Assembly: GCA_002269645.1 (NCBI GenBank)
Contig: NIVC01000767.1
Coordinates: forward strand, 1 to 64,000
From: Macrostomum lignano
Lineage: Eukaryota
Direction: 5' to 3'
Length of the DNA: 64,000 nucleotides
Positions within the stretch are counted from its first letter, which is position 1. Every line of letters starts with the position of its first letter. A program made the position numbers and the translations under genes. The notes under the pieces are model-generated. The model was not told where the DNA came from and searched no databases. It was given only the letters and a program-made list of their open reading frames with translations. Shown in pieces: positions 3,969-64,000 of the stretch.

Positions 3969-5480
3969 ATGCCAAGAAAGTGCAGCGTATTTCCGTGCTC
4001 GTCAAATTACAACTCTGAAGCCGTTCGAACACGGACATTTGCGTTTCCCAGAGATCCACAGGAGCGAGAGCGATGGAGAAAGGCGCTGCCAAATATTCTC
4101 CAGGTAAGAAACCAGATCATTTGCTGTCATTACTGCTGCATAATTCCGCTTCAATTCTGCATGCCAGTCTCGTCCAAACAACTTGAAACCCAAAATTTAT
4201 TATTTTAGAGAGTGACTGACCATATGGGCGTGTGCGTAAAGCATTGGCCAAGCGATGCTCCAATGGTCAAGAAAAACTCTACCGAAAGGCCAATTAATCC
4301 TCCTTCTGTTTTTAATGGAGTTCCTAGCTCGTGTTTTGTTCAGAACCAAGGTACGTAACTTAAAGATTGCTCAACACTTAGCGTCTATATCGATTTTGCC
4401 GCTCACAATTATCTTACTTTTATTTTTACTCTTATTTTAGACCAGGACCGACAGGCCGAAAAGCGCGGTGTTCTTTCTGATGCGAGGTGCGGCGACATCG
4501 ATGAGATGGACGCTTTTCAGCTGCTTGATTTTTTGCCGGCATGGGAAAGTTTTCGAGCTGAGGTGAAAAATTCGGATGTCGTATCTCGACATGCACTGAA
4601 CACAGCTATTCTGAACGAAGACGTTTACTTGTTTACGTTAGATAAAGATGGAGACCTGTCTGTTCGAATTTTTGTCTCACCCAACTTTCTGATTCGTGCA
4701 TTCAAACTGCATACACCGATTTCGGTTCGAGACTTGTTGGGATTTCAACCGACACTCAAGCGCTGGATGCTGTTGTCGTGCAGTGCAAAAATTCCGACGC
4801 CAATCCCCAACGTGAAGTCGAAGCGTTTGTTAGTAGAATCAGTGATGATATAGATTCTGACTCTGATTTGGATCCGTCGCTTCAGTTTTTTATTCGACAA
4901 CTTAGCCTTACATTAGTAAATCGGAACAATCGCCGCTATGACATTTCACTACACCTTTTCACGTTCAATTTTGAACAAAGTCCAGTTCTAAAAAAACTAG
5001 CGGAAATTCAATTCAGACAATTCAGACTGGGGACAATTTTGTCTATGGCTAAACCTCGCTTCCGTAGCAGAATGTTTTGAACTGGGGTTTGTTGCCCCAG
5101 TCTGAATTGTCTGAATTGAATTTCCGCTAGTTTTTTTAGAACTGGCCTTTGTTCAAAATTGAACGTGAAAAGGTGTAGTGCGACAGTCAGCATTGCTCTA
5201 CTTGATCAGTAGTTCGGCTTACTCTTACCTACGGAAGCTATTGCCATTGCCTCATCCCCGAACGCTGCAGCTGCAACTAGCAGGTACAGGAGAAGTTAAC
5301 ACAGAAACCGACGCAGCCGATGTGATCCAGTCAGTTTTTGCTAGTCTATCAGGAGCTCAGCGAAACTGCGTAATATGTTTGACGAAATGTACATACAACC
5401 GTCCGTTCGATATCGATGCCGTCACCTTCTGGGTCGAGCCGTCGACGATCCGGACCAGGTTCCTTTATGTACGAGCTACT
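3969..5480 (+). pseudogene. THAP-domain P-element-type transposase, disrupted and 3'-truncated
   Basis: Spliced exons 3969-4103, 4209-4350, 4441 onward give MPRKCSVFPC...FAFP...RW...GVCVKHW...PSVF (THAP C2CH). After removing the MITE the sequence reads RRYDISLVRQSALLYLISSSAYSYLRKLLPLPHPRTL, then FDEMYIQ after a frameshift (first catalytic Asp motif of P transposases). The rest of the catalytic core is missing. Confidence 0.85.
4952..5175. mobile_element. 224-bp foldback MITE with TA target duplication, inserted in the transposase
   Basis: About 90-bp inverted arms (CACCTTTTCACGTTC.../...GAACGTGAAAAGGTG), TA on both sides (4950-4951, 5176-5177). Excision restores the transposase frame. Confidence 0.85.
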
Positions 5481-6404
5481 GACTGTTTGTGTCGTCTTGT
5501 CCTTGGAGTTCCGTATTTGCTTCTATCTTCTTGCCGTTGGAGTTTCATCTTCGCTTTCATCCTTTATCTTCTTGCCGTTGGAGTTATATCTTTGCTTTCA
5601 TCTTTTATCTTCTTGCCGTTGGAGTTTTTTGTTGGTATGGCGGTTACTTTATTGTAAATAATTATATCACTGGTTCCTATTCTTTAAATTAAATACTCGA
5701 CATTGCCTCGCTTTACTATTTAATCTAACCGTTAATGCCTGATAGCAGAGAAGACTTGAAAAAGCCATAGAACAATACTTTTAAGCGAGCCCCTCAGATT
5801 TTTTGCCATGAATTGGCTCGTTTCGCGTCCCGAGGGTTTTAGTTGTCCCTGGAGTCATCGTGAAGCAATGCACAAAACCGTGCAGGAATGCATTTCTTCG
5901 CCTAATGCTTTTTCAGTGAAATTTTACCATACTCGTTGACATCCACTCCTGCACGCAAAAGCGTGCAAGAATGCCATTCCTGCATGGAGAATCAGCCGAC
6001 AATGAGACATGGACGCCATAGATATTTTTGAGCTTATCGAGGCTGATATAGCCTGGCTAAAAACACATAGCCGCAAATAATGAGACCAGTTTGATGGGTG
6101 CTGCACTCCAATGCTCTAGATTTGCGACCTTCAACAAAGATCAGATTGCTGAAAAGATCGACGCCGCAGTGCCTGCCAATGCGAAGAGGAAGAAGAAATG
6201 GGCCGTCAAGCCAAATGAGCCGTCAAGTCCAGACATGAGGCCATCCTGAACGGCGGACACACTGGATTGCTGGTGCTCAAGCCAATTAAAGAGTGAAGCA
6301 ACGCCGAATGGGCCTACTAGCTGCGGATGATTTGAGGCAGGACTTAATTTGAGACCAGTTACATGAAATCTGACCATAGACTACGCGAAAGTAAGGCATC
6401 CTAC

Positions 6405-6763: not shown

Positions 6764-7809
6764 TTATACATCAGGCGTCTTCCAGCACATGACGATATGG
6801 CGACCAATCTTGAAGAAAAATGACAGCCCAGGCTCGTGGCTATAGCTGGCCCAGTACTGTCCCGTAACCATGACAACGTGCCAAAGCTTGCCGAACTGGC
6901 CGTCCAGCTGCTGCTTCAGCCGGCCAGCGACATCTTTCTCATCTTTGCCGCGTCTCTGGGCGTCGCGAAATATTTCAGTCAGGTCCACCTGCATCTCTAG
7001 GCCCATGCTGGAGGCGATGACGGTGACGTCCTCCGGCAGCCGGTTATTCCTCAGACACTCGGCCTTGAGCTGGTTGAGTCGGTAGATTCGCCTATTTTAG
7101 GAAAATGCGATGGGTTGCTTTCGTGCGTTACCACGAGTTCATTCGACGCATTGCACGAAGTTGGGTTTTGCGAGCTAATGATGACGCAGCAATATGTGCT
7201 CTAAAGAATAAAAAGTTCAATTGAATCATGAAAAACAGTATACAGTCTTACGCTTGCTTCGGATTGAGCCCCAGAACGTTGCAGTATTCGTCCAGTGTAA
7301 TCGCGCCGTCATCGTTCTCATCAAATAGCTTCATCCATTTCTGAAAAAGCGAATTCGGTAAATGCCATGACTTGGATGTTTGTGTGTAACTATTACTCAA
7401 TACTATCTGCGAGTCTGATGAATGCAGCTAAATAACATTTCAGCGACCATTTTACCTACCTTGATACCAACATAAGATCTGTTAGATCAGTTTAAACCCT
7501 TAAATACCGGAGTCCGGATCACCGTGTGAATAAGTACACAAAGCATTGGAAACACTGGAAGCTACAAACCTCGCCAAAATTGGCCTCAAACTGGCTGCTG
7601 CTGGTCATGTAGGCCGCTAATTCATCCGGTGTGATGGACTCGCTCCGATCCTTGTCGACCGCAAAGAACGCATCAAGGAAGGGATTCTGTGCAGCTGCCT
7701 CCTCTGCTGCGACGCGTCCCGGTGACAACGGCGGTGGAGCAGGCGATGTTGAGCCCGAAGCGGAGGCAGTGGAGTGCGCTGGCGACACAGAGAGCGACAT
7801 GCTTCGCAT
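6764..7809 (-). CDS. Tegument allergen-like (TAL) protein: EF-hand pair plus C-terminal dynein light chain-like domain, about 241 aa
   Basis: Exons 7809-7570, 7340-7252, 7200-7132, 7091-6764, all GT-AG, phases 0/2/2, 726 nt total. EF loops DKDRSESITPDE and DENDDGAITLDE. DLC-like tail LKQQLDGQFGKLWHVVMVTGQYWASYSHEPGLSFFFKIGRHIVMCWKTP. Start could be 7809 or 7800. Confidence 0.9.
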
Positions 7810-8399: not shown

Positions 8400-9823
8400 G
8401 ATTGACTCATCCCGTGAATCGACAAATCCAATATAAGATTGTTTAAAAGTAAATTTATGTCCATGTAGTGATAGAAAGCTTAGATATTACTACAAATATT
8501 CTGCACGTTGCCTTTAAATCCTTTGACTGCCTGGGATCTTAAGTTTGGATATCCAGTTGTAAATTAGTTGCTGTTATGTTTTTTTTTTCTTTTCTCTAGG
8601 AATTTCTGCTGCTATATAGTGAGCTAAGTCGTTTTTATATACAGCAAGTTTTAGCCAAAGCATTTGAATTAGCGCATGTTTAGATGCATATTTTTTTAAT
8701 CAAAAACTATTGAATTGAAAGTAAATATTTAATTAAGATTCCGTTTCCTTCTGTCTAATATTCGAATGTGTAGAGCAGTGCCAAAGACTCCAATCAATAT
8801 TTCAAAAGAATCTAAAAGATTTTCGCTATTTAGTAGTTTAAATATTTTTGCTAGAGCGACAATCTACAAAAAAGTTCAACAACGTTGAAATTTTTGTTTG
8901 TCTTTTTGCAACTAAGGTTATCCGCGGCAAATTGACGTAGGAGCACATTAACAGGCAAGTCAGTGTTATTAACACTTTGAAATGGTACCGCATGTCGTGA
9001 AACAGGTCACTGATTCACTGTTATTAATTTTATACCTACTTCCCGTTCTCACCCAGAGTAGTTTTTTACTATAATATCTAAATATACTAAATCTCTAATA
9101 TTTGTATGCTTGTCCATAACGCTCTAGTAAGATATACTATTACTATGTTTCAAAGCACCGCACCACTTAGCTGATATTAGCAAAAATAAAACTTAAGCAA
9201 TTCACGTTGTCGTTTTGTTGATTATATTTTAGAATTTACATTTGCTACTTGCTACAAGTAAATATAGTATATGCATTTATAATTTCGAAATGCTGTTTTT
9301 AAGGCTGATTATTAGAGTTCTTAGGGGTGAATATGTGTTGCAAACTAGTCACGTGCAATCAGATACAATTAGATTGTACTCTTTCCAATTTTTGGGTTGG
9401 CTTGTTTTGCCTCTTTTTATTTCAAATTTTGTATTGCATTTTCATCCTCTTATTGTATTACTTATTTTAAGACCTAAAGCATAGTCCTAAAAATTAAGGA
9501 CTTTAGCTTATTGTTTTCTTAACTTAAAAATTTTAAATAGGCTTTTAAAATAGATTTTCTAATTCAAAGAGCTAAAATATTTAAACGGAGTTAGAATATC
9601 ATTTTCATCTTTAATAATTTTAACCAACATATATAAAAACAATACCGTTATAATATTAATAACTTTGTTGTAACTGGAGCTATGAGTATTTTCCTATACT
9701 AAAAACTGAAATACGTTAAATTACCATGTATAACAAAACGCTTGCTTTCCATGTTATGCCTTAGTTTCGCATTTTTATAGTGAATGATGATACACGTGTG
9801 TTTTCATTTCTGTTCCAAAGAAT

Positions 9824-12496
9824 ATGCCAGAAGGAAACATTTTACAAGTACTAGACTACTACAAAAATTATGCGCTAGAAGGAGATGAAATTCCATTAAA
9901 TAACTATCTTTTGAGTTCCCCAAAAGGATTTCCAACTTTGCGCAGCCTGGTTGACAGTCAGCTGCAAGCTGCCAAACCGAGTGCGGCGAGGGCCAACCAG
10001 CCACAGCCAACTCCGTGTAGCAGACGAAAAGAAGAGCTGTTTCAGATTCAGAAATTCACCGATATTGATCAGGCAGCAGAGTCGGTGCAACTGAACTGGC
10101 AGGACGACTGGGAGACGCTTTCTCAGAAATTGTTTCGGAATTCGACCGGCGATCTCGAAAAAGTGCGCTCTGCTTTTGTGTTTACCTGCAGAGACTGGAA
10201 CAACGGACTGCCAGCTCGCAACAAAGAGAGCTCAGCGTACACGCTTATTCGAGAGAGAAACTATGCAGAGATTTTTGAGAACTTGGTCAGGTAGGACTGC
10301 TCATTCTGAAGAGTTCAGGTTCAGTCATTCAGTTTGTTAAGGAAATTAATTTTTGTAGCAAATTGTGTGTAAAGATTGTTGAAGAAGAGCACGTGAAGCC
10401 TGTATGTACGATTTGATGCGAGAGTGCCTTGAAAGTGCTAAATTTTTATTTTAGAAAAGAGACTATCGCATTGGGAGTGAAACCTAGTAGATTAGCCTCT
10501 TAGCAGACCAGTGTCTTAGTTGATCAGTGTCTTAGTAGACCAGTGTCTTAGTAAACCAGTGTCTTAGTAGACCAGTGTCTTAGTAAACCAGTGTCTTAGT
10601 AGACCAGTGTCTTAGTAGACCAGTGTCTTAGTAAACCAGTGTCTTAGTAGACCAGTGTCTTAGTAAACCAGTGTCTTAGTAAACCAGTGTCTTAGTAGAC
10701 CTGTGTCTTAGTAAACCAGTGTCTTAGTAGACCAGTGTCTTAGTAAACCAGTGTCTTAGTAGACCAGTGTCTTAGTAGACCAGTGTCTTAGTAAACCAGT
10801 GTCTTAGTAGACCAGTGTCTTAGTAGACCAGCGTCTTAGTAAACCAGTGTCCTCGTAGACCAGCGTCTTAGTAAACCAGTGTCTTAGTAGACCAGTGTCT
10901 TAGTAGACCAGTGTCTTAGTAGACCAGTGTCTTAGTAGACCAGTGTCTTAGTAAACCAGTGTCTTAGTAAACCAGTGTCTTAGTAGACCAGTGTCTTAGT
11001 AAACCAGTGTCTTAGTAGACCAGTGTCTTAGTAAACCAGTGTCTCAGTAGACCAGTGTCTTAGTAAACCAGTGTCTTAGTAAACCAGTGTCTCAGTAGAC
11101 CAGCGTCTTAGTAAACCAGTGTCCTCGTAGACCAGTGTCTCAGTAAACCTGTGTCTTAGTTGATCAGTGTCTTAGTAGACCAGTGTCTTAGTAAACCAGT
11201 GTCTTAGTTGATCAGTGTCTTAGTAGACCAGTGTCTTAGTAAACCTGTGTCTTAGTTGATCAGTGTCTTAGTAGACCAGTGTCTTAGCAGACCATTGTCT
11301 TAGTAGACCAGTGTCTTAGCAGACCAGTGTCTTAGCGGACCAGTGCACTGAGAGTCTTGAGGCTCGATCGCACCTCCATAAAATGGAGTAAATTTTTGCG
11401 TGATCACGCAACTTGTACATATTCTTTAGTCCCTTTGTGCATCAGTGCTGCGACTTGACGGTTCATTTAGCGTAGCGGTGCACTAACCAAGAGTGACTTA
11501 GTGAGCCTTTTCCCATAGTAATGAAAGTATAGCAAACGCAGGAAAATATTTCAGAGCCGGAGGCGTACCAATAGAACGAATCGAAGGCTGGAAGAAGTCT
11601 GCAGACTCCAAAGTTGGCTTCCATGTCAGACGATCGGTAAATCCTTGGCACGCCTGCTTCGTGAGCGGAGAATGGCGACTGGTTGACGTCCACTGGGCTG
11701 CCTCGTCGGTATTCAGCAGCCGCACTGGCAGATACCGCGAGCTGGACAAAGATGGCGAGTTGTCCCAGACCCTGACAGCCAGTGAGACCCCTCAGATTGA
11801 GGAGAAGTTCGGCCGCAACGAGTTTTTCTTTCTAACTGATCCCGAGAAGCTGGTAATGAGCCACTACCCGGACGATAGGAGCTGGCAGCTGTTGAAGAAG
11901 CCGATCAAGTTCGAGCAGTTCGAGCAGATGCCGCACTATTTTGCCGGCTCTGAGCAGGCCATGCCGCACTGCTGGCAGGTGGAGCCGCTCAACTATCTGA
12001 AAAATGTCATTCTAGCTGAAGAGGAAGGCCGAGTTGAGATTCTTTTCAGGTAATTTATTTTAAAATTTTGGACGTGCAAACTTTTCAACAGCTCGTCGTA
12101 CACCCGTACAAAGTGCCGATTGGAATGGATATTGCAGAGTGCCTGACGCCGAGCTGCTTCGAGATTTAGAATTCGATGCCAAGGTCAGCATCGCCAGCAG
12201 GTGCTTGTCGAGTTCTGATGCGCCGGCATCCAACAGGTTGAAACATGGCAGAATCATTCGCTGCGACCGGCTTGGTCCTGCACCATCGGACATTGTCCGG
12301 GTTGTGTTTCGGTCACCTTGCGCTGGCAAGTTCGCTCTGACAGTTCGAATTAAAAAGAAGTATGGAGGCAGCGGCTGGGCTCGACTGGCCACCTACATTG
12401 TGCACTGTCCTGTGGTAGGTGTCCTGTGGTTTGTCTGCCTCAGTCTGTCTTTCCTTAGTCTAGGGAAAGCCATGTGTTTCTCTGTCATCAGCATTG

Positions 12497-12548
<52 letters not shown>

Positions 12549-14227
12549 TATTATTATTATTATTAAAAGTTTTTGATTATTAAATATTATTAAGAATTGA
12601 AACCAGCTGACGAAAAGTGAAGTTTCAAAAACCAGTCCTGGTCTATCGCGAGTTACACTTACACTTACTGTTAATCTATGAAAGCATATTGTTACTACAG
12701 GTGTCTAAAAAACCAGACTCAAAGTCATCTCAATCGCCAAATCCAGAACCAGACTCAGAGTGCGGACCAAAGCTCAAACACGCATCAGCACCAAATCGAG
12801 AGTGAAAACCAGAGTGAAAACCAGAGCCAAAACCGGAGTCACAACCAGTTTCAAAACCAGAGCCAAAGCCAGAGCCAAAACCGAAGCCAAAGCCAGAGCC
12901 AAAACCAGAGCCAAAACCGGAGTGCAAGCCCTTTGGGTCGAAAGGTTCCTATGGGAAATTTGACCAGAGATCAACTGGCTCAGCTGCGCAGCTACCCGAG
13001 GCCGCCAAAATGGGAATTCAAGGCGGTCAAAGCCACACTGCTCATGCTGGGCTTCTACGAGGGACGGAGCAACGTGAGTGGCAGGAACGGTGTTGTTTAG
13101 GGTGGCAACAATTTCAAGTATACGAAAGGTTAAAATATGGCTAATTTAAATTTCAGAAATGGGTCCGCTGTCAGCAGCTAATCTCTGCCATACCTCAGGC
13201 GGCCAACGATTTAATTATCGAATCCGTTCATCCGGAAATTGCTGCCAGATGCCTGCAACTCGTCCAGTCGAAATCTGGTACGCCAGCGGCCAAAGATAAC
13301 CCGGAAGAGAAAGCTTCGTATATCTTCAGGGAGTGGGTGAGTTTGCGATGCAATTGCGATGTGACTGAGGGTCAGGGCATGAGATAGGTGTCGGGAGGGG
13401 CAGAGGGGCAGCGTGTGAGGTGGGTGTCGGGAGGGGCAGGGGAGCACGTGGAGGTGGGTGTTGAGAGGGGCAGAGAGGCATGGCAGCGCGTGAGGTTTCG
13501 GGAGGGGCAGGGGGAGTGCGTGGAGGTGGGTGTCGGGAGGGGCAGGGGGCGCGTGGAGGTGGGTGTCGTGAGGGGCAGGGGGCGTGTGGAGGTGAGTGTC
13601 GGGAGGGGCAGGGGGCGTGTGGAGGTGAGTGTCGGGAGGGGCAGGGGGCGTGTGGAGGTGAGTGTCGGGAGGGGCAGGGGGCGTGTGGAGGTGAGTGTCG
13701 GGAGGGGCAGGGGCGCGTGGAGGTGAGTGTCGGGAGGGGCAGGGGGCGCGTTGAGGTGGGTGTCGGGAGTGGCAGGGGGGCGCGTGGAGATGGGTGGTCG
13801 AGAGGGGCAGGGGAGCGCGTGGAGGTGGGGTGTCGGGAGGGGCAGGAGGAGCGCGCAAGGTGTGGGTATCGGGAACGGGTCTTTAGTTTCAATTTATTCG
13901 CTGAAATAAAATTTCTGTCAGAACTTTATGTATGCAATCTAACATTAAATTCTCAAGGTTGAAAAGAACGCCAACGCAGTCAAGGAGGTGACGCCGCCCG
14001 GCGAGTTCAAAGCAGCTGACAAACAGCGGCAGGTGCAGCTGTTCGGCATCACACCCGAGGAGGAGGCCCATTGGGACTGGGAGGACAATATAAAAAAGTC
14101 TGAAGTGGCCCAGAAATTCATCTGCTTTTGCGACTATTGTCACGTTGCGATTTATAATAACGATTTAAAGATCCACCTGCACTGCAACGTGTCCAGAGCG
14201 AATGGCTTGCGCAAAAATGCGCTGTGA
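9824..14227 (+). CDS. KY/hillarin-like gene B: transglutaminase-like domain (triad degenerate), Ig-like repeat, Q/S/N-rich linker, dynein-MTBD-like domain
   Basis: Exons 9824-10290, 11555-12049, 12138-12414, 12701-13073, 13157-13336, 13958-14227. KY motifs DLEKVRSAFVF, GEWRLVDVHW, EFFFLTDPEKLVMSHYPDDRSWQLL. Phases are consistent except for one 1-nt shift needed in the A6 run at 12707-12712. Confidence 0.8.
10497..11345. repeat. Intronic minisatellite, 16-bp unit (AGACCAGTGTCTTAGT)
   Basis: Direct reading; lies in intron 1 of KY-like gene B. Confidence 0.95.
12497..12564. repeat. (ATC)n(ATT)n microsatellite
   Basis: Direct reading; explains the poly-Ile tail of ORF 12139-12576. Confidence 0.95.
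13380..13870. repeat. G-rich intronic minisatellite, about 33-bp unit
   Basis: GTGTCGGGAGGGGCAGGGGGCGTGTGGAGGTGA repeats starting shortly after donor 13337. Confidence 0.9.
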
Positions 14228-17758: not shown

Positions 17759-28283
<10,525 letters not shown>

Positions 28284-32792: not shown

Positions 32793-50123
<17,331 letters not shown>

Positions 50124-51014: not shown

Positions 51015-55495
<4,481 letters not shown>

Positions 55496-62479: not shown

Positions 62480-64000
62480 AAATGGGAAGCTACGTATTCC
62501 AACTTGGAAGCTACGTATTCCAACTTGGAAGCTACGTATTCCAACTTGGAAGCTACGTATTCCAACTTGGAAGCTATGGATTCCAGTCGGAAGCTATGGA
62601 TTCCAGTCGGAAGCTACATATTCCAAACGGGAAGCTACATTTTCTAAATAGGAAGCTATGGATTCCAGTCGGAAGCTACATATTCCAAACGGGAAGCTAC
62701 GTATTCCAAATAGGAAGCTACGGATTCCAGTCAGAAGCTACATGTTCCAAACAGAGTTGCCACCCCGGCGAATTTTAATCGCTGGGCGATTTTAAATAGC
62801 TGAGCGATTTTTTGTAATATTCAGCAATTTTCAGCAATGTTTTATTCTTATGGGGTAGAATCCCCCCCCACAATTACCCCAGAATTACCCAGAATCGTGA
62901 GATTCTGGGTGTAGGAATCGTGAGATTCTGGGGGTAAGAATCGTGAGATTCTGGGGGTAAGAATCGTGAGATTCTGGGGGTAAGAATCGTGAGATTCTGG
63001 GGGTAAGAATCGTGAGATTCTGGGGGTAAGAATCGTGAGATTCTGGGGGTAAGAATCGTGAGATTCTGGGGGTAAGAATCGTGAGATTCTGGGGGTAAGA
63101 ATCGTGAGATTCTGGGGGTAAGAATCGTGAGATTCTGGGGGTAAGAATCGTGAGATTCTGGGGTAAGAATCGTGAGATTCTGGGGGTAAGAATCGTGAGA
63201 TTCTGGGGGTAAGAATCGTGAGATTCTGGGGGTAAGAATCGTGAGATTCTGGGGGTAAGAATCGTGAGATTCTGGGGGTAAGAATCGTGAGATTCTGGGG
63301 GTAAGAATCGTGAGATTCTGGGGGTAAGAATCGTGAGATTCTGGGGGTAAGAATCGTGAGATTCTGGGGGTAAGAATCGTGAGATTCTGGGGGTAAGAAT
63401 CGTGAGATTCTGGGGGTAAGAATCGTGAGATTCTGGGGTAAGAATCGTGAGATTCTGGGGGTAAGAATCGTGAGATTCTGGGGGTAAGAATCGTGAGATT
63501 CTGGGGGTAAGAATCGTGAGATTCTGGGGTAAGAATCGTGAGATTCTGGGGGTAAGAATCGTGAGATTCTGGGGGTAAGAATCGTGAGATTCTGGGGGTA
63601 AGAATCGTGAGATTCTGGGGGTAAGAATCGTGAGATTCTGGGGGTAAGAATCGTGAGATTCTGGGGGTAAGAATCGTGAGTTTCTAGGATAAGAATCATG
63701 CTCAAAACAAAGCCTTTTATTTCAAAGTTGCAGCGATTTTTTATTACATATGCGATTTTTGCAAGCCAAGAGTCGGTGGCAACATTGCTTCCAAACTGGA
63801 AGCTACATATTCCAAATAGGAAGCCATGGATTCTAGTCGGAAGCTACATATTCCAAACTGGAAGCTACGTGGAAGCTTCACGTAACTTGGAAGCTTCACA
63901 TTCCAAAAAGGAAGCTATGGATTCCAGTCATAAGCTACATATTCCAAACGGGAAGCTACATGTTCTAAATTGGAAGCTGCATATTCTAAATAGGAAGCTA
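62480..64000. repeat. About 20-21-bp GGAAGCTAC..ATTCCAA minisatellite, interrupted by a hAT-like MITE
   Basis: Same unit at 62480-62750 and 63790-64000. Confidence 0.9.
62752..63787. mobile_element. hAT-like MITE carrying an internal 23-bp tandem array (62885-63690)
   Basis: Termini CAGAGTTGCCACC / GGTGGCAACATTG. 8-bp flanks GTTCCAAA / CTTCCAAA (7 of 8 match). Internal GAATCGTGAGATTCTGGGGGTAA repeats. Confidence 0.75.

Follow-up and report, generated by a model that had tools for sequence, protein, structure and literature searches.

To our knowledge, the microtubule-binding domain (MTBD) of dynein has hitherto been treated as a fold exclusive to the dynein stalk tip. Transglutaminase (TG)-like domains that have become inactive are well known as scaffolds. 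Described members of the KY/hillarin family of TG-like proteins localize to cytoskeletal sites, and leech hillarin is placed at the axon hillock (PMC3081291). Here we describe Mlig020068.g3, a six-exon gene of the free-living flatworm Macrostomum lignano located at positions 9824-14227 on the forward strand of contig NIVC01000767.1 (assembly GCA_002269645.1); the stretch analyzed comprises positions 1 to 64,000 of this contig and is referred to in its full length of 64,000 nucleotides as the window. The gene encodes a 671-amino-acid protein that draws on known kinds of domain, namely the KY/hillarin TG-like family, the Ig-like_KY domain and the dynein MTBD. Judging from sequence and modeled structure, we consider it rather probable that the protein is built from four parts, a dead TG-like core, an Ig-like_KY domain, a hypervariable linker and an MTBD-like domain without stalk or motor, and that the last of these serves as an anchor to microtubules or tubulin.

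Sequence profiles and the predicted fold provide good support for homology between the C-terminal domain family and the dynein MTBD. A profile of 10 sequences including the Mlig020068.g3 protein (A2) gave 52 matches in the PDB at E ≤ 10, all of them dynein heavy chains, with the alignment falling on the MTBD (best E-value 3.9e-7). In order to avoid circularity, a second profile (A4) was built from 14 members without this protein and its near-identical copies. It gave 55 PDB matches at E < 0.01, again exclusively dynein heavy chains at the MTBD, with a best match of 3.4e-10 (43 bits) over ~115 residues to the yeast and mouse cytoplasmic dynein MTBDs. The domain of the Mlig020068.g3 protein itself aligned with A4 at a probability of 99.6% (hhalign, E 8e-25). 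An earlier reading of the window made from its letters alone, here called the sequence-only reading, had noted an MTBD-like pattern at the C-terminus of this protein, and the profile matches place that pattern far beyond chance.

The predicted structure points in the same direction. An AlphaFold2 model built on A2 was all-helical (predicted local distance difference test score (pLDDT) 88.9; predicted template modeling score (pTM) 0.84) and forms a predicted compact six-helix bundle. In a Foldseek search of the PDB, ranks one to five were all occupied by dynein MTBD or stalk entries (3ERR, 5AYH, 3WUQ, 6RZA and 6KJO; probability 0.77-1.0, template modeling (TM) score 0.41-0.59), the match to 6KJO having a TM score of 0.59 and a root-mean-square deviation of 3.8 Å over 126 columns. 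Motifs shared with dynein are collinear and follow the order E(L/I)R S..PP ... LLG ... W ... S.A...W. Against the Pfam MT family (PF12777), the best relative reached 19.8 bits (cut-off 24) at profile positions 93-215, which correspond to the MTBD; by such scores, curated domain models miss this family. Neither an AAA module nor the two coiled-coil strands of a stalk (CC1 and CC2) were found in the 671-amino-acid protein, in agreement with the motor-less module that had been proposed. The domain is instead preceded by a linker rich in Gln, Ser and Asn and followed by ~75 residues, and in the long relatives of the protein it is preceded by helical repeats.

For the C-terminal domain, which spans ~150 amino acids, an exhaustive single-sequence phmmer search of 1.84 billion representative proteins (E < 1e-3) identified 12 relatives. 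These include the M. lignano paralogs P0007 (172 amino acids), P0008, P0009 (250 amino acids) and P0011, a Ridgeia fragment (P0010), a EukProt protein (P0014) and three KY-like proteins, from M. lignano (P0012; Mlig001984, 1217 amino acids), the leech Helobdella robusta (P0015; HELRODRAFT_173674, 1194 amino acids) and the snail Nucella lapillus (P0016; KAL8598713.1, 2303 amino acids). Further members, from Ridgeia and Lamellibrachia, came from a profile search, together with ‘kyphoscoliosis peptidase’ fragments from Elysia and Plakobranchus. The known range, comprising Platyhelminthes, Annelida, Mollusca, one EukProt eukaryote and environmental fragments, is to be read as a minimum, since the only exhaustive search used a single sequence. 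A word-indexed homolog search with the C-terminal 200 amino acids returned nothing and missed even the identical deposited protein; its null result is therefore uninformative on homologs.

The full Mlig020068.g3 protein matches P0012 and P0015 in both its TG region and its C-terminal domain, and thus the succession of TG-like core, Ig-like_KY domain and C-terminal domain is a conserved architecture. The combination of TG-like and MTBD-like domains is shared by the longer M. lignano paralog, the leech protein and the snail protein, and on the strength of these alignments the gene described here is a compact version of it. Other paralogs join the C-terminal domain to unrelated N-terminal modules (e.g. 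the ankyrin-annotated P0020 and the coiled-coil protein P0008), which suggests a portable module. A family-specific tail, ..F.(P)A...RQ..(I/L)...EE....LDWED, is conserved in P0007, P0008, P0009, P0012, P0015 and P0025 and is absent from dynein.

Sequence comparison supports the assignment of the N-terminal half to a KY-type TG-like core, probably with one Ig-like_KY domain. In phmmer searches, with E-values calculated for an assumed database of one million sequences, the TG region matched P0012 at 4.6e-21 and P0015 at 6.4e-19. Both proteins carry Transglut_core and strong Ig-like_KY matches, P0012 passing PF01841 at 26.1 bits, and P0004-P0006 are further homologs of this half. A profile of seven sequences covering the TG-like half (A3) matched FAP246, a protein of the Chlamydomonas central apparatus with a papain/TG-like domain (E 4.6e-19), and a solved ‘transglutaminase-like domain-containing protein’ (9crn, E 8.5e-7). 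The AlphaFold model of the N-terminal half was of moderate quality only (pLDDT 60) and was used solely for the FAP246 and Ig-like matches; FAP246 ranked first in Foldseek (E ~5e-9), and Ig/FN3-like folds came next, matching the C-terminal part of the model. The Mlig020068.g3 sequence alone had no Pfam match to PF01841 and only a weak one to Ig-like_KY (PF23265; residues 305-412, E 6.8e-4, 20.2 bits against a cut-off of 27), a domain that is strong in the relatives P0012, P0015 and P0016.

The catalytic triad of the TG-like core is degenerate. The Cys position is occupied by Glu in ERNYAEIF (codon 10253-10255, aligned with P0006) and the His position by Asn in VNPWH (11640-11642). The Asp is kept in LVDVHW (11685-11687) and is invariant across the homologs, as are W, FLT.P and WQLL. 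The homolog P0006, which retains the triad, reads CDGYAGLF, NHAWNAV and LLDATW at the three motifs, compared with ERNYAEIF, VNPWHAC and LVDVHW in the Mlig020068.g3 protein. Cys and His are likewise absent from P0012, P0015 and P0016, the three long relatives that share the C-terminal domain. The homolog alignments, in which this protein has no intact triad, confirm the loss of Cys and His and the retention of Asp stated in the sequence-only reading, and its assignment to a KY-like pseudo-transglutaminase is borne out by the phmmer matches to KY-like proteins and by A3. The replacement of Cys and His, together with the same loss in the long relatives, therefore supports a pseudo-enzyme, a KY-type scaffold that is predicted to be catalytically dead.

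The gene was rebuilt from three forward frames (9824-10290, 11555-12049, 12138-12414, 12747-13073, 13157-13336 and 13958-14227), giving the following features:

9824-10290, forward strand: exon 1, with the ATG at 9824, the N-terminal region and the first half of the TG-like core including ERNYAEIF; donor GT at 10291; translation as in PAA74371.1
11555-12049, forward strand: exon 2, which completes the TG-like core, carries the FFFLTDPE...WQLLKKPI motif and enters the probable Ig-like_KY domain; based on frame, splice sites, homolog alignments and the A3 match to FAP246 across these motifs
12138-12414, forward strand: exon 3, with the remainder of the single, probable Ig-like_KY domain (protein residues ~305-412); based on Pfam, relatives and fold matches
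12747-12953, forward strand: 5' part of exon 4, low-complexity linker rich in Gln, Ser and Asn, encoded by a repeat of the CCAGAGCCAAAA type; the acceptor AG at 12745-12746 gives the deposited protein
12954-13073, forward strand: 3' part of exon 4, start of the MTBD-like domain (GNLTRDQLAQLRSYPRPPKWEFKAVKATLLMLGFYEGRSN) with the equivalents of the CC1 end and helix H1 and with the PP kink; aligns to dynein
13157-13336, forward strand: exon 5, MTBD-like helices H2-H6 (KWVRCQQLI ... VHPEIAARCLQLV ... KASYIFREW); based on family and dynein alignments, the AlphaFold2 model and Foldseek
13958-14086, forward strand: 5' part of exon 6, end of the H6-like helix and the family-specific tail; based on family alignments
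14087-14227, forward strand: 3' part of exon 6, C-terminal tail; it contains the Cys/His cluster CFCDYCH-x10-HLHC (14123-14185) and ends in the stop codon TGA (14225-14227)

With exon 4 beginning at 12747, the translation is identical to the NCBI entry PAA74371.1 (hypothetical protein BOX15_Mlig020068g3) except for two extra N-terminal residues in the entry. The first 413 amino acids show 99-100% identity to the NCBI entry ‘hypothetical protein BOX15_Mlig020068g3, partial’ and to two UniProt ‘TGc domain-containing protein’ entries. Every intron is bounded by AG/GT sites. The peptide strings quoted in the sequence-only reading are all present in the frames it gave, and its junctions 13073/13157 and 13336/13958 are canonical; the family alignment runs unbroken across both, which supports these splices. 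Its start of exon 4 at 12701 had to be corrected. Because exon 3 ends in phase 0 at 12414, a start at 12701 is out of frame and reads frame 0 into stops (VSKKPDS...NRE followed by a stop). In the deposited model, the acceptor AG lies at 12745-12746.

At the 5' end of the gene, the NCBI models are flagged as 5'-partial and start two to three codons upstream of the ATG. A polypyrimidine tract ending in AG lies immediately upstream of the ATG (9800-9823; ttctgttccaaag), a sequence that would be compatible either with trans-splicing of a spliced leader at this acceptor or with a non-coding exon further upstream.

Five residues of yeast dynein form salt bridges to tubulin, K3117, R3124, R3152, R3159 and R3201 (Nishida et al., PMC7042235). 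In a MAFFT alignment of the family (n = 16) with the yeast and mouse MTBDs, these positions are occupied as follows:

K3117 (H1): Arg in the Mlig020068.g3 protein; basic in 6 of 16 members
R3124 (H1): Arg in the Mlig020068.g3 protein; basic in 14 of 16 members
R3152 (H3): Val in the Mlig020068.g3 protein; basic in 9 of 16 members
R3159 (H3): Ser in the Mlig020068.g3 protein; basic in 7 of 16 members
R3201 (H6): Lys in the Mlig020068.g3 protein; basic in 4 of 16 members

Three of the five positions are thus basic in this protein. Its C-terminal domain as a whole has an isoelectric point (pI) of 9.4 and a net charge of +5, compared with 9.6 and +5 for the mouse MTBD, a likeness in keeping with microtubule binding. 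In the mechanism we propose, the TG-like core, having lost its catalytic Cys and His, would be a scaffold for binding without enzymatic activity, and the C-terminal domain would be a portable targeting module that tethers this inactive TG/Ig part to microtubules or tubulin by means of a basic face formed by H1, H3 and H6. The same domain would tether other N-terminal modules in the paralogs. Binding is proposed to be constitutive and not nucleotide-gated because there is no stalk to shift the helix registry, and the family-specific tail would probably pack back on the bundle, replacing CC2. From sequence and model together, we infer a function as a non-motor microtubule binder or cross-linker.

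Several observations weigh against this proposal, and they bear on different steps of it. It is the family profile, and not the Mlig020068.g3 sequence alone, that connects the domain with dynein. In a phmmer search of the PDB with its C-terminal 200 amino acids, nothing meaningful and no dynein was found, and the protein by itself had no match to Pfam MT at E ≤ 1 and did not pass the gathering score. At the same threshold only 2 of the 14 family members touched this Pfam family, and the Foldseek E-values were weak (0.04-2), with unrelated helical proteins appearing from rank six on. A convergent or chance likeness among small all-alpha domains is nevertheless rejected as highly improbable, given that A4, built without the protein in question, retrieved dynein alone and exactly at the MTBD, that the shared motifs are collinear, and that the Foldseek ranking is clean, with dynein in all of the five best positions. 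A different objection concerns the fusion, which would be an annotation artifact if exons 1-3 (TG/Ig) and exons 4-6 (MTBD-like) were separate transcription units or isoforms that are never joined. The exon 3/4 junction sits in the low-complexity linker, where homology cannot check it, and the exon 4 junction first proposed for this gene was out of frame. A Met at 12951 (MGNLTRDQ) lies directly before the domain, and P0007 and P0009 are short stand-alone paralogs. The database models also disagree, A0A1I8JCC8 (P0002) skipping exon 4, which would remove H1, and P0003 using another exon 5 acceptor. Yet independent gene predictions for Helobdella (P0015), Nucella (P0016) and another M. lignano locus (Mlig001984, P0012) arrive at the same fusion, the four NCBI copies of the gene are all modeled as fused, and the exon phases fit the acceptor at 12747, so that we regard an artifact as improbable.

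The main rival accepts both the homology and the fusion and holds that the MTBD-derived domain no longer binds microtubules, having been re-purposed for another partner such as septins, another filament system or an intramolecular surface, so that it would act as a general adaptor for protein-protein contacts attached to an inactive TG scaffold. The contact residues are consistent with such a change, since both H3 arginine positions are substituted (Val and Ser) in the Mlig020068.g3 protein and of the five yeast salt-bridge positions the family keeps only R3124 well, conservation at the other four being poor. Furthermore, the strongest family motifs (W-x-x-C, VHPEIAAR and the PA...RQ tail) are not features of dynein and could mark a different binding surface. 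Strong microtubule binding by dynein requires the stalk coiled coil to be in the right registry, and the present domain lacks the stalk that would impose the high-affinity registry. For D-hillarin, action via the septin Pnut has been reported (cited in PMC3081291). Against re-purposing, H1 with its R3124 equivalent, the PP kink, the invariant Trp and the S.A..(F/Y).W of H6 have all been kept, the domain is still as basic as the mouse MTBD, and FAP246, the nearest solved relative of the TG half, belongs to a microtubule-based structure. We consider loss of microtubule binding unlikely, though a more serious contender than the other two explanations, and prefer the microtubule or tubulin anchor.

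No description of an MTBD homolog outside the dynein heavy chain, or of one joined to a KY-type core, was found in the literature; many subscription papers, including the original hillarin papers, lay outside this search, and its outcome is absence of evidence only. The view that the locus represents an undescribed system thus holds in part. The architecture is without a published description among the sources found, but the gene is deposited as hypothetical and UniProt has automatically named two M. lignano paralogs ‘MT domain-containing protein’, so that automated annotation has partly caught the resemblance to the MTBD. As a tentative generalization, the MTBD may not be exclusive to dynein heavy chains: spiralians and at least one EukProt eukaryote may carry dynein-derived, stalk-less modules that have been reused as portable, constitutive microtubule anchors in dead KY-type transglutaminases, an ankyrin-repeat protein and coiled-coil proteins, with Mlig020068.g3 as the most compact example.

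If the family does bind microtubules, it would offer a natural experiment on an MTBD without registry control by a stalk and a minimal microtubule tag of ~120-150 amino acids. It would also be a case of a motor part recycled as a module of non-motor microtubule-associated proteins, and would provide a concrete cytoskeletal function for the poorly understood inactive branch of KY/hillarin proteins. If it does not, it is all the same a conserved spiralian domain family outside the coverage of Pfam.

Two regions of the protein differ from the conserved parts of the architecture. In the linker, the coding repeat (CCAGAGCCAAAA-like) is read as QSQN/QSQS in this copy and as PKPEPKP, which corresponds to frame 0 in the window, in other copies of the gene. 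The linkers of P0071 (670 amino acids) and P0074 (630 amino acids) differ in the same manner (PKPEPKP versus QSQN) and vary in length. Because the copies differ in reading frame and length, the linker is hypervariable and can shift frame among near-identical copies. In the C-terminal tail, the Cys/His cluster occurs only in this gene and its near-identical copies and is lacking in the other family members. It matched no Pfam family, and we conjecture that it may form a small zinc-binding knuckle.

A paralogous locus (L001) shows 95-98% identity to the Mlig020068.g3 locus. Since this identity includes the introns, the two are recent duplicates, and a selection test between them is uninformative. 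The upstream neighbor in the window (6764-7809, reverse strand) encodes two EF-hands and an LC8-type dynein light chain domain (open reading frames (ORFs) with ...FDENDDGAITLDEY... and ...GKLWHVVMVTGQYWASYSHEPG...); the same neighbor in L001 is listed with PF13499 and PF01221. We take this architecture to be that of the flatworm tegument-allergen-like (TAL, Sm22.6-type) proteins, and the proximity of an LC8-type gene to one with an MTBD-like domain is probably a coincidence. On the downstream side, a large exon (21306-22196, forward strand) encodes a Miro-type mitochondrial Rho GTPase with Ras, EF-hand and EF_assoc_2 matches. It recurs downstream in L001, and therefore the three-gene arrangement has been duplicated as a block.

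Mobile elements in the window are represented by a 961-amino-acid ORF with reverse transcriptase and RNase H (51738-54623, forward strand), which is a retroelement, and by a short ORF matching the helix-turn-helix of a P-element/THAP9-like transposase (5178-5657, forward strand). Tandem repeats lie within the introns of Mlig020068.g3, namely a 16-bp minisatellite of 53 copies in intron 1 (10498-11345), a (CAT)n/(ATT)n microsatellite in intron 3 (12495-12560) and a G-rich 33-bp minisatellite in intron 5 (13388-13855), and give rise to long spurious ORFs on both strands. The window as a whole is unusually rich in minisatellites (22242-25190, 20311-20981, 27063-27998, 44652-46350, 48183-49545, 62891-63697 and others). 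The largest (22242-25190) consists of ~189 copies of a C-rich 16-mer over ~3 kb and explains why GC and AT skew are so extreme at 22-26 kb.

Compared with the dynein MTBD at the stalk tip (PF12777; PDB 3ERR, 6KJN/6KJO and 6RZB), the C-terminal domain of Mlig020068.g3 shares the E(L/I)RS..PP kink, a hydrophobic H1 ending in LLG, the invariant Trp, the S.A..(F/Y).W of H6, a basic net charge and a predicted helical bundle with TM scores of 0.5-0.6 to solved MTBDs. In contrast to dynein, it lacks the flanking CC1 and CC2 strands of a long antiparallel stalk as well as any AAA+ modules. The family also has its own W..C and VHPEIAAR motifs and a PA...RQ...EED..LDWED tail, remains below the Pfam gathering threshold, and does not conserve four of the five yeast salt-bridge positions.

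Among TG-like proteins, members of the KY/hillarin/LTD-1 group, in which a PF01841 core is followed by PF23265, share with the Mlig020068.g3 protein the FRW, W.AV, W(R)LVD.(H)W and F(F)LT(D)P...WQLLK.P motifs and, probably, the Ig-like_KY domain. Vertebrate KY (kyphoscoliosis peptidase) keeps the triad, and P0006, a bacterial-type homolog, keeps Cys, His and Asp, whereas the flatworm protein has Glu and Asn in place of Cys and His and a single Ig-like domain. It also differs from hillarin proper of Drosophila and C. elegans, which has an N-terminal LIM zinc finger, in that no LIM domain was matched by Pfam. Its C-terminal MTBD-like domain was not found in any described KY or hillarin architecture. 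The ‘W180’ domain of hillarin is unlikely to be the MTBD-like domain, since its five conserved Trp would fit the TG-like core.

The closest relatives in overall architecture, P0012, P0015 and P0016, have the same degenerate TG-like core, Ig-like_KY domains, C-terminal MTBD-like domain and shared tail motif. They are longer (1194-2303 amino acids), with two to three matched Ig-like_KY stretches and a long helical-repeat region before the MTBD-like domain, and P0012 and P0015 begin with MGC(N/G)SS. The Mlig020068.g3 protein has one Ig-like domain, a low-complexity linker and the extra Cys/His tail. FAP246, from the C1b projection of the Chlamydomonas central apparatus (PDB 7N6G and 7SQC), corresponds to residues ~160-290 of the Mlig020068.g3 protein through its papain/TG-like domain, which there is a structural part of a microtubule-based assembly. 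Unlike the flatworm protein, FAP246 adds leucine-rich repeat and EF-hand domains, keeps the His in NHCWAGV, and reaches the microtubule by way of a multiprotein projection and not by an MTBD-like domain. By analogy, KY-type TG-like domains may have been employed repeatedly as structural elements of microtubule-based machines.

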